Shown piece by piece: positions 5,151-5,633 of a stretch of DNA of 64,000 nt. Position 1 is the first letter of the stretch; every line of letters starts with the position of its first letter. Position numbers and translations under genes: made by a program. The notes below the pieces were generated by a model. That model did not search any database, was not told where the DNA came from, and saw only the letters and a list, made by a program, of their open reading frames with translations. The stretch lies in sequence record PQ657772.1; one strand, given 5' to 3'.

Positions 5151-5633
5151 TTATGCTTCAACTTTGCGATGAGATTCGATCCATTCCTCGCGAGTCATAC
5201 CGCTGGCGTTAATCGCGTCCAGTACTACCGCAATGCAGTTACCACGCACCGGAATCAGATATTCTTCCCCGTTGTCCAGTACTACCGCTACGCGTTCCTG
5301 AATCCATTTTTTGGCTTTTACTTCTGGCTTGTCTTCCCCATACTTAACCGCCAGGGCTTTTTGTGCCATCTCTGTAACTACTTCCAGATCCAATCCAACT
5401 ACTGCCGCCTGAATACTTTCGATTGTTGCTTGTAGTTCTGCTTCACGGGCCGCCTTTGCCGCTTCAATTTCTGCCGCTTTATTTGCTTGTAGTTCTTTCG
5501 CAGTACTGTACGCGATGTTAAAATTATTGCGTACCGCTTTCATGGTATCGTTATCCAGTTCAGCCAGGATCTCAGCCGCGACGTTAGTTTCATTTGCTAC
5601 CAGTGCTTTGATGAATGATTTTACATTAGCCAT
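5151..5633 (-). CDS. divergent H-NS-like protein
   Basis: coiled-coil N-half; C-terminal KAKK..VLDNGEE..RGNCIAVVLDAINASGMTREEWI parallels H-NS KAKR..[30 protein letters not shown] (H-NS sequence recalled from memory). Confidence 0.6.
   Translation of the reverse strand: MANVKSFIKALVANETNVAAEILAELDNDTMKAVRNNFNIAYSTAKELQANKAAEIEAAKAAREAELQATIESIQAAVVGLDLEVVTEMAQKALAVKYGEDKPEVKAKKWIQERVAVVLDNGEEYLIPVRGNCIAVVLDAINASGMTREEWIESHRKVEA

Follow-up and report, generated by a model that had tools for sequence, protein, structure and literature searches.

H-NS is the main barrier of Enterobacteria against AT-rich foreign DNA, and phage proteins directed against it are known, among them T7 gp5.5 and T4 Arn. 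To our knowledge, the answers of coliphages to H-NS are inhibitors such as these two and not homologues of the silencer itself. Here we describe a gene at positions 5151..5633 (minus strand) of a 64,000-nucleotide stretch of sequence record PQ657772.1 (the window), the product of which is supported, by sequence profiles and structure models, as a very divergent, full-length member of the H-NS family, homologous in both domains and with the H-NS domain order. Full-length H-NS homologues with both domains have been described from mobile elements, namely EPV1 H-NS, Sfh, Acr2 and IncX H-NS (PMC7074111, PMC3097231), and the LUZ24 protein Mip has been described as an 'early protein' (PMC8501957). 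In MvaT of Pseudomonas, residues G99-N100 of the KGGNH loop are inserted into the minor groove, where N100 takes the place of H-NS R114, and R80, the arginine before strand 1, forms the other arm of an 'AT-pincer' (PMC4466236).

Phage context and family distribution

The window showed 99.9% identity to Escherichia phage EC.P1 (Asteriusvirus) and 93–99% identity to other Asteriusvirus jumbo phages of 350–385 kb, and has a GC content of 35.7%. The orthologue of vB_Ec-M-J lies within the annotated 21.5-kb direct terminal repeat of that phage, and the homologue of fENko-Kae01 is likewise located in the terminal repeat of its phage. Because of this location in a direct terminal repeat, of approximately 21 kb in the Asteriusvirus phage, the packaged genome carries the gene at each end, and two copies are found in records that include both repeats; no paralogue was found elsewhere in the window. 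The family is small: an exhaustive profile search of 1.84 billion representatives returned 15 clusters only. Carriers in the phage collections were Asteriusvirus, Alcyoneusvirus (RaK2, K64-1, phiKp_21) and the Munch/SE_PL/fENko-Kae01 group, and metagenomic members were found in similar arrays of small same-strand genes. One metagenomic phage contig (L021) contains two paralogues of the gene in tandem (698–1291 and 2047–2640, 61% identical), which are separated by one small gene and whose pairing recalls H-NS/StpA and MvaT/MvaU; a gene coding for a DksA/TraR-type zinc finger is located near them, as is also the case in the Asteriusvirus terminal repeat.

Evidence for homology to H-NS in both domains

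The open reading frame (ORF) runs on the minus strand from 5633 to 5151 (ATG at 5633–5631, TAA at 5153–5151) and encodes a protein of 160 amino acids; its assignment as the coding sequence of an H-NS-family protein (5151..5633, stop codon included) draws on the ORF, homology, structure searches and the ratio of nonsynonymous to synonymous substitutions (dN/dS). In every inspected record with the gene, the product is annotated as 'hypothetical protein'. The gene is genuine and not a chance ORF, since dN/dS against the PBECO4 orthologue was 0.185 (dS 0.55, dN 0.10; 84% amino-acid identity), indicative of purifying selection, and since G80, G131 and N132 are invariant in relatives down to 27% identity. 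R114, G122, G145, R148 and I152 of the phage protein were nearly invariant in relatives.

A word-indexed search with E. coli H-NS gave only relatives at least 82% identical, which are useless for a profile; a diverse H-NS alignment was built from the chromosomal form and eight plasmid forms (34–67% identity), and a MvaT alignment likewise from plasmid genes. When the 22-sequence phage family was compared with 14 diverse H-NS proteins by hhalign, a collinear match with a probability of 94.3% (E-value 9.6e-8) was obtained, which extends over 120 columns (phage residues 27–160, H-NS residues 22–137) and covers both domains. Because coiled coils can inflate profile scores, both alignments were split by domain: the N-terminal halves matched each other with a P-value of 2.5e-4 and the C-terminal halves with 2.3e-5, and the cross-domain controls were negative (N versus C, 0.2; C versus N, 0.045). 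Overall identity to H-NS was 13–22%, with approximately 15–20% in the N-terminal domain, in which helices 1 and 2 were not aligned by sequence, and BLASTP against E. coli H-NS aligned only residues 114–152 with 96–134 (23% identity, E-value 0.03). For each of the H-NS landmarks G69, G104, G113 and G127, and for the pair F133-L134, the phage family has conserved residues at the matching positions; G69, in the GIDPNE of H-NS, is aligned with G80 of GLDLE, which is invariant. Pfam, PHROGs and PDB sequence searches were uninformative, and weak matches to Tox-PL-2, DUF3846 and DUF1993 (E-values 0.006–0.14) were rejected as inconsistent between members.

An AlphaFold model of the monomer, predicted from the 22-sequence alignment, had a mean predicted local distance difference test (pLDDT) score of 83.6; a first run with 11 close sequences had reached a pLDDT of 64, and the PDB Foldseek search made with it was meaningless. 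The better model places a helical, oligomerisation-type domain at residues 1–100 (5334..5633, minus strand; helices 2–12, 16–23, 28–77 and 83–97), consistent with the match of the N-terminal halves in hhalign, with residues 28–77 predicted to form one long Ala/Glu-rich helix. It is followed by a flexible linker at residues 101–113 (5295..5333, minus strand; pLDDT about 60), which includes EDKPEVKAKKW and has four lysines and three acidic residues, and by a predicted C-terminal DNA-binding fold of H-NS type at residues 114–160 (5154..5294, minus strand), a beta-beta-alpha-alpha unit with strands 114–118 and 124–128, a loop, and helices 135–144 and 148–155. We take this order of helices and strands to be the published layout of H-NS. 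Among the 550,129 Swiss-Prot models of the AlphaFold database, ranks 1–17 of a Foldseek search were all H-NS or StpA, aligned over residues 9–151 with probabilities of 0.95–0.99, and the best match among the clusters of that database was annotated 'Histone' (probability 0.93). A shape search of the ESM Atlas returned H-NS clusters in rows 1 and 2 and, in row 10, a 56-residue cluster with PF00816 as its only domain on residues 111–153 (root-mean-square deviation 2.9 Å). Language-model neighbours of the whole protein, and of residues 105–160 alone, were the H-NS and MvaT families, which we treat as leads only.

The initial annotation, made from the sequence without database searches, had called the protein H-NS-like on the basis of an Ala/Glu-rich coiled-coil half, a lysine linker and two short peptides, all of which are present in the ORF, and had described the genome as AT-rich, in agreement with the GC content given above. 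The H-NS-like identity is borne out by profile–profile homology over both domains and by structural searches in three libraries.

The altered DNA-binding hook

BLASTP and hhalign agreed on an ungapped register in which phage G122..I152 corresponds to G104..L134 of H-NS. In this register, Q112-G113-R114 of H-NS is replaced by R130-G131-N132 (codons at 5238..5246, minus strand), W109 by I127, G111 by V129 and P116 by I134, and the counterparts of G127 and F133-L134 are G145 and W151-I152. The stretch TWTGQGR of H-NS thus reads LIPVRGN in the phage protein, with loop length and central glycine kept, Q changed to R and R changed to N. The claim that this motif had been replaced at unchanged spacing, made against an H-NS C-terminus quoted in the initial annotation, holds in all its parts: the quoted sequence agrees with that of E. 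coli K-12 H-NS, the register is the same by both methods, and the motif is altered rather than lost. When compared with the Q/R-G-R motif, the first and central positions were compatible and the final arginine was replaced by asparagine. The first position of the hook is arginine in the Asteriusvirus clade, and the last is asparagine in every family member. That G-N never varies within the family speaks for a DNA-reading loop that continues to be used.

The same pair is found in MvaT, and the phage family combines it with a near-invariant arginine at the start of strand 1, R114 of the phage protein, which has a conservation of at least 90% and precedes G131 by 17 residues, the corresponding distance in MvaT/Pmr being 19. 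Homology to MvaT was considered and rejected: hhalign against a seven-sequence MvaT/Pmr alignment gave P-values of 0.027 (full length) and 0.5 (C-terminal domains), values that do not improve on those of H-NS itself against MvaT. The G-N hook is most simply read as a parallel, convergent solution on an H-NS scaffold.

Proposed role and alternative explanations

We propose, with a probability of about 0.6, that the protein is a self-associating phage H-NS that binds DNA and acts, on the AT-rich genome of the phage, as a competitor or modulator of host H-NS, DNA binding itself being an inference. At 36% GC in a host of 51% GC, the phage genome would be a prime target for host H-NS, and with this gene the phage probably supplies its own counterpart of the system by which the host silences foreign AT-rich DNA. 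Host RNA polymerase would transcribe the gene early, shortly after entry of that genome end into the cell, and the protein would dimerise or oligomerise through its N-terminal helices and bind the minor groove through G131-N132 together with R130 and/or R114. It would occupy or remodel H-NS-type filaments on phage DNA, possibly also on AT-rich DNA of the host, with the outcome that the phage, and not the host, would choose which AT-rich DNA is silenced.

Several findings weigh against this proposal. Pfam models PF00816 (Histone_HNS) and PF22055 gave no match even at an E-value of 10; PF00816 matched none of 26 family members (E-values up to 0.1–10), so that the curated Pfam threshold was not reached, and PF22470 (Histone_HNS_N, the model of the H-NS N-terminal part) matched two members at E-values up to 10, the better of which (P0026; 2.1e-4, 21.5 bits) was below the 24.5-bit cutoff. 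The PDB sequence search had no match, and Foldseek on the PDB together with the VIA wide search gave generic helical hairpins, with no H-NS chain among them. Since the searches of solved structures were empty, the fold assignment rests on comparisons between predicted models and on the profile match. Whole-chain template modelling scores (TM-scores) were low (0.3–0.48), owing to the flexible link between the two domains and to the monomeric model. Support for the early timing is indirect (promoter type and position), the public RNA runs (metagenome contigs) being uninformative. Several landmarks of the H-NS DNA-binding domain differ (I for W109, V for G111, N for R114, I for P116), and this domain is acidic (isoelectric point 4.84 versus 6.3 for H-NS; five basic versus eight acidic residues). 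The linker, with three acidic residues among its four lysines, is less basic than that of H-NS, and helix alpha-1 of the C-terminal domain has no lysine in the Asteriusvirus clade, the distant relatives having xLKDA.

The last of these features, from the replaced landmarks and the acidic domain and linker to the lost helix lysines, favour an alternative in which the protein, through a retained oligomerisation domain of H-NS type, joins host H-NS/StpA in common assemblies and poisons the filaments by its crippled DNA-binding domain, so that the phage genome is de-silenced in the manner of H-NST. This reading, like that of an AGTACT reader discussed below, comes from the initial annotation, and neither gained support from the computations. 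Of the N-terminal matches to H-NS, the best conserved is that of the site-2 region (GLDLE..AVKYG, versus GIDPNE..AVKSG), in line with such a dominant-negative action. One would, however, expect a dead DNA-binding domain to drift or to be truncated, as in H-NST, whereas the whole domain is under purifying selection and the G-N of its loop is the most conserved feature of the family; moreover, asparagine at the hook position is a working minor-groove reader in MvaT (PMC4466236). N-terminal identity to H-NS is only approximately 15%, helices 1 and 2, which form dimerisation site 1, being those that remain unaligned, and the presence of two paralogues in one metagenomic phage suggests that the family partners with itself. 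We therefore regard filament poisoning as unlikely.

It is less probable still that the protein is not a true relative of H-NS but a coiled coil joined to a small alpha/beta domain, similar by convergence or chance and with an unrelated job, for example as a scaffold or adaptor. The absence of matches among curated H-NS models and solved H-NS structures, the whole-chain TM-scores below 0.5 and the tendency of coiled coils to inflate profile scores would be accounted for in this way. Against it, each domain matches its cognate H-NS domain independently and in the same order, without gaps in the DNA-binding domain, and the cross-domain controls fail; the four glycine landmarks and the aromatic-aliphatic pair are matched; and 17 of the 17 top structural matches in Swiss-Prot are H-NS or StpA.

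AGTACT sites and the possibility of sequence-specific binding

The hexamer AGTACT, with an extended consensus C-AGTACT-G and the extended form CAGTACTG, occurs in 253 copies in the window versus approximately 22 expected (11.6-fold), most densely in 1–17000, and is the only strongly enriched palindromic hexamer of the window. It is 17–21-fold enriched in the loci of Alcyoneusvirus (L011) and fENko-Kae01 (L012), both of which carry the gene family. In approximately ten sigma-70 promoters of the terminal repeat, AGTACT runs directly into the -35 element, as AGTAC-TTGCAA or AGTACTATTGACA, and AGTACTG stands directly 5' of the -10 element, the pair being 20–23 bp apart in the form AGTACT-TTGACA/TTGCAA...AGTACTG-TATAAT; as AGTACTG abuts the -10 element, an extended -10 (TGnTATAAT) is formed. 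Promoters of this type were recognised by sequence at window positions 712–739, 974–1001, 2866–2891, 4368–4395, 6476–6501, 7261–7286 and 9217–9244 (all minus strand), and the class accounts for only about 20 of the 253 sites.

According to a further alternative, the altered hook would retarget the protein to this palindrome, found next to the -35 and -10 elements in a class of early promoters, and the protein would switch these promoters off or on. The excess of the hexamer in the window, its 12–21-fold enrichment in three gene-carrying lineages of related phages and the paired sites in the terminal-repeat promoters are in its favour. Its probability is nevertheless slight, a little below that of a chance resemblance to H-NS: the co-occurrence is among related and hence non-independent phages and could be explained by shared ancestry, H-NS-type domains read the shape of the minor groove and are not known to read 6-bp palindromes, most copies of AGTACT lie inside genes, and the promoter of the gene itself (P1, see below) has no AGTACT flanks.

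Within the coding sequence, the 15-nt string GCGGTAGTACTGGAC is found twice, 57 nt apart (5274–5288 and 5217–5231, minus strand); it is translated as AVVLD both in strand 1 and in helix 1, and AGTACT is part of either copy. A contig joint in a public run that goes back by 57 nt is probably due to this duplication. Among other palindromic hexamers, CCATGG, CAGCTG, AGGCCT and AGCGCT have no copy in the window versus about 6.7 expected for each, and CCGCGG and CCCGGG are also absent, which is consistent with avoidance of restriction sites.

Expression unit and leader element

The gene forms a single-gene unit on the minus strand, consisting of an upstream terminator, promoter P1, a leader of approximately 115 nt, the coding sequence and its own terminator. 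The intrinsic terminator of the preceding gene (5844..5860), with a GC-rich stem and a T-run, is kept in orthologues and isolates the unit. P1 (5757..5784) is of sigma-70 type, TTGACA-16 nt-TAGAAT, with 11 of 12 consensus matches, and conservation of its -10 element and of the first bases transcribed persists where protein identity has fallen to 38%. The leader contains the core TAAGTAGACNGCCNGTAAGTC (5712..5732), recognised by its conservation across phages, and a CCWG...CWGG hairpin (about 5692–5723), the 5' arm of which lies inside the core. A possible second promoter, P2 (5672..5700; TGGACA-17 nt-TACACT), is weak and identified by consensus match only, its position being homologous to that of T7 promoter A2. 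A ribosome-binding site, GAGGA (5642..5646), is located 8 nt 5' of the ATG, and the intrinsic terminator of the unit lies at 5108..5129; both were assigned from the sequence.

The leader is almost invariant, with one mismatch in approximately 120 nt while the coding sequences are at dS 0.55. The core TAAGTAGACNGCCNGTAAGTC is found exactly upstream of homologues that are 38–72% identical and upstream of the fENko-Kae01 gene. A scan of IMG/VR identified four contigs with the core, two of which are jumbo contigs with an H-NS-like ORF about 120 nt downstream, while the other two are T7-like and carry it 5' of an ocr gene and of an S-adenosylmethionine (SAM)-lyase gene, respectively. The shared element comprises 38 nt, TAAGTAGACMGCCWG(A)TAAGTCNNACGAAARMCWGG, and is conserved far beyond the protein; its site in the T7 group is upstream of gene 0.3 (ocr or SAM lyase), and in T7 it occupies a place between A1 and A2, both annotated as E. 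coli promoters, and adjoins the -35 element of A2. Copies recognised by shared sequence are those of the window (5692–5750, minus strand), L012 (2018–2038), L025 (1353–1373), L027 (187–207), L028, L031, L029 (553–573), L030 (6508–6528) and T7 (L032, about nt 560–597).

The shared T7 element supports early expression by host RNA polymerase, which we infer from promoter type and position. The word 'early' in the initial annotation thus stands only indirectly, on these two features; the four public RNA runs, available as Logan contigs (three metagenomic and one labelled-organism run that is probably DNA), are of mixed strains, fragmentary and undirected, and were uninformative on timing and expression. 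Judged from the shared element, the gene occupies the position at which phages of the T7 group keep their first anti-defence gene. A structured RNA in the leader was considered and rejected, as there is neither an Rfam family nor excess stability. An RNA-directed role of the protein, as a StpA-like RNA chaperone or as an autoregulator that binds its own conserved mRNA leader, is the least probable of the explanations, since the far better conservation of the leader than of the coding sequence and a small hairpin, in which one A-U pair is swapped to U-A in a compensatory manner, are set against a fold no better than that of shuffled sequence (z +0.68), the lack of an Rfam match for the leader, and the occurrence of the element before ocr and SAM-lyase genes in T7-like phages without the protein, so that the element is not a dedicated operator for it.

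A bolder version of the proposed phage H-NS, which we consider doubtful, is that of a take-over factor in the 'first gene in' slot, expressed from the same early control module as the anti-restriction gene of the T7 group. Such a factor would co-assemble with or displace host H-NS, and its Gly-Asn hook would prefer a different subset of AT-rich sites, possibly TA-step palindromes such as AGTACT, so that the phage genome would escape silencing while AT-rich islands of the host, including defence islands, would stay or become silenced. If this were true, a silencer homologue would represent a new class of phage counter-defence.

The gene is bordered by long non-coding gaps of approximately 230 nt (window 4923–5150 and 5634–5866), compared with a spacing of about 80–100 nt between neighbouring genes, and the corresponding gaps in Alcyoneusvirus and fENko-Kae01 are 530–615 nt long (L011 4404–5000 and 5502–6117; L012 1645–2173). 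Gaps of this length point to additional regulatory DNA or to small RNAs that escaped annotation. In a contig from a public run (X1), window position 4935 is joined to 5737, and the 801 nt skipped hold exactly this gene cassette; the joint could represent a natural variant from which the gene is missing, or repeated intergenic sequence could have misled the assembly.

Comparison with known systems

The phage protein resembles H-NS and StpA of Enterobacteria (PF22470 and PF00816) in length class, domain order, the four predicted N-terminal helices, the glycine turn before helix 4 and a flexible basic linker, as well as in the predicted C-terminal beta-beta-loop-alpha-alpha unit with its equal loop length and central glycine. 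It differs from them in scoring below the thresholds of all curated hidden Markov models, in its R-G-N hook, in the replacement of W109, G111 and P116, in a more acidic C-terminal domain and a less basic linker, and in being encoded by a lytic phage and not by a chromosome or plasmid. With MvaT, MvaU and Pmr of Pseudomonas (PF22055) it shares a Gly-Asn pair in the loop that joins the hairpin to helix 1, structurally where H-NS has R114; its conserved arginine before strand 1 (R114) may correspond to R80 of MvaT, and the MvaT DNA-binding domain ranks first among the language-model neighbours of its C-terminal part. In contrast to this likeness, no sequence homology to MvaT is detectable, the phage loop has the length of that of H-NS while the KGGNH loop of MvaT is two residues shorter, and a lysine network on helix 1 is absent from the Asteriusvirus protein, distant relatives having one lysine in this helix. 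The family thus offers a natural experiment on the DNA-reading hook, in which the critical arginine of an H-NS scaffold is always asparagine, a solution at which MvaT arrived on its own. Should the protein bind DNA, the range of sequences known for H-NS hooks would be widened; should it poison host filaments, a new anti-silencing strategy would be added; and either way the 'hypothetical protein' records could be re-annotated.

H-NST and Ler are, like the proposed phage H-NS, horizontally acquired H-NS relatives that modulate H-NS silencing, and the RGR hook of Ler has an arginine at the first position, as is the case here. However, H-NST is without a DNA-binding domain and Ler keeps the second arginine, whereas the phage protein keeps both domains and has this arginine changed to asparagine. 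T7 gp5.5, T4 Arn and LUZ24 Mip are comparable as phage proteins aimed at the xenogeneic silencer of the host, but they have unrelated folds and act as binders or DNA mimics and not as homologues of the silencer.

In a search of the literature, no paper was found that describes a homologue of H-NS from Asteriusvirus or from lytic jumbo phages related to it. What is new here is an unannotated full-length H-NS relative, with a consistently different hook, in a group of strictly lytic jumbo phages (Asteriusvirus, Alcyoneusvirus and Munch/fENko-Kae01), where it is associated with a terminal repeat and host-type promoters. EPV1 H-NS, Sfh, Acr2 and IncX H-NS are likewise mobile-element copies of a xenogeneic silencer with both domains, but these are readily recognised as H-NS (34–67% identity in our comparison), have a Q/R/N-G-R/K hook, mostly Q/RGR, and are found on plasmids or in a phage known only from the metagenome of a bioreactor for enhanced biological phosphorus removal (EBPR; host Ca. 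Accumulibacter), whereas the protein described here escaped recognition by annotation, has a G-N hook and is encoded in the terminal repeats of strictly lytic jumbo phages.

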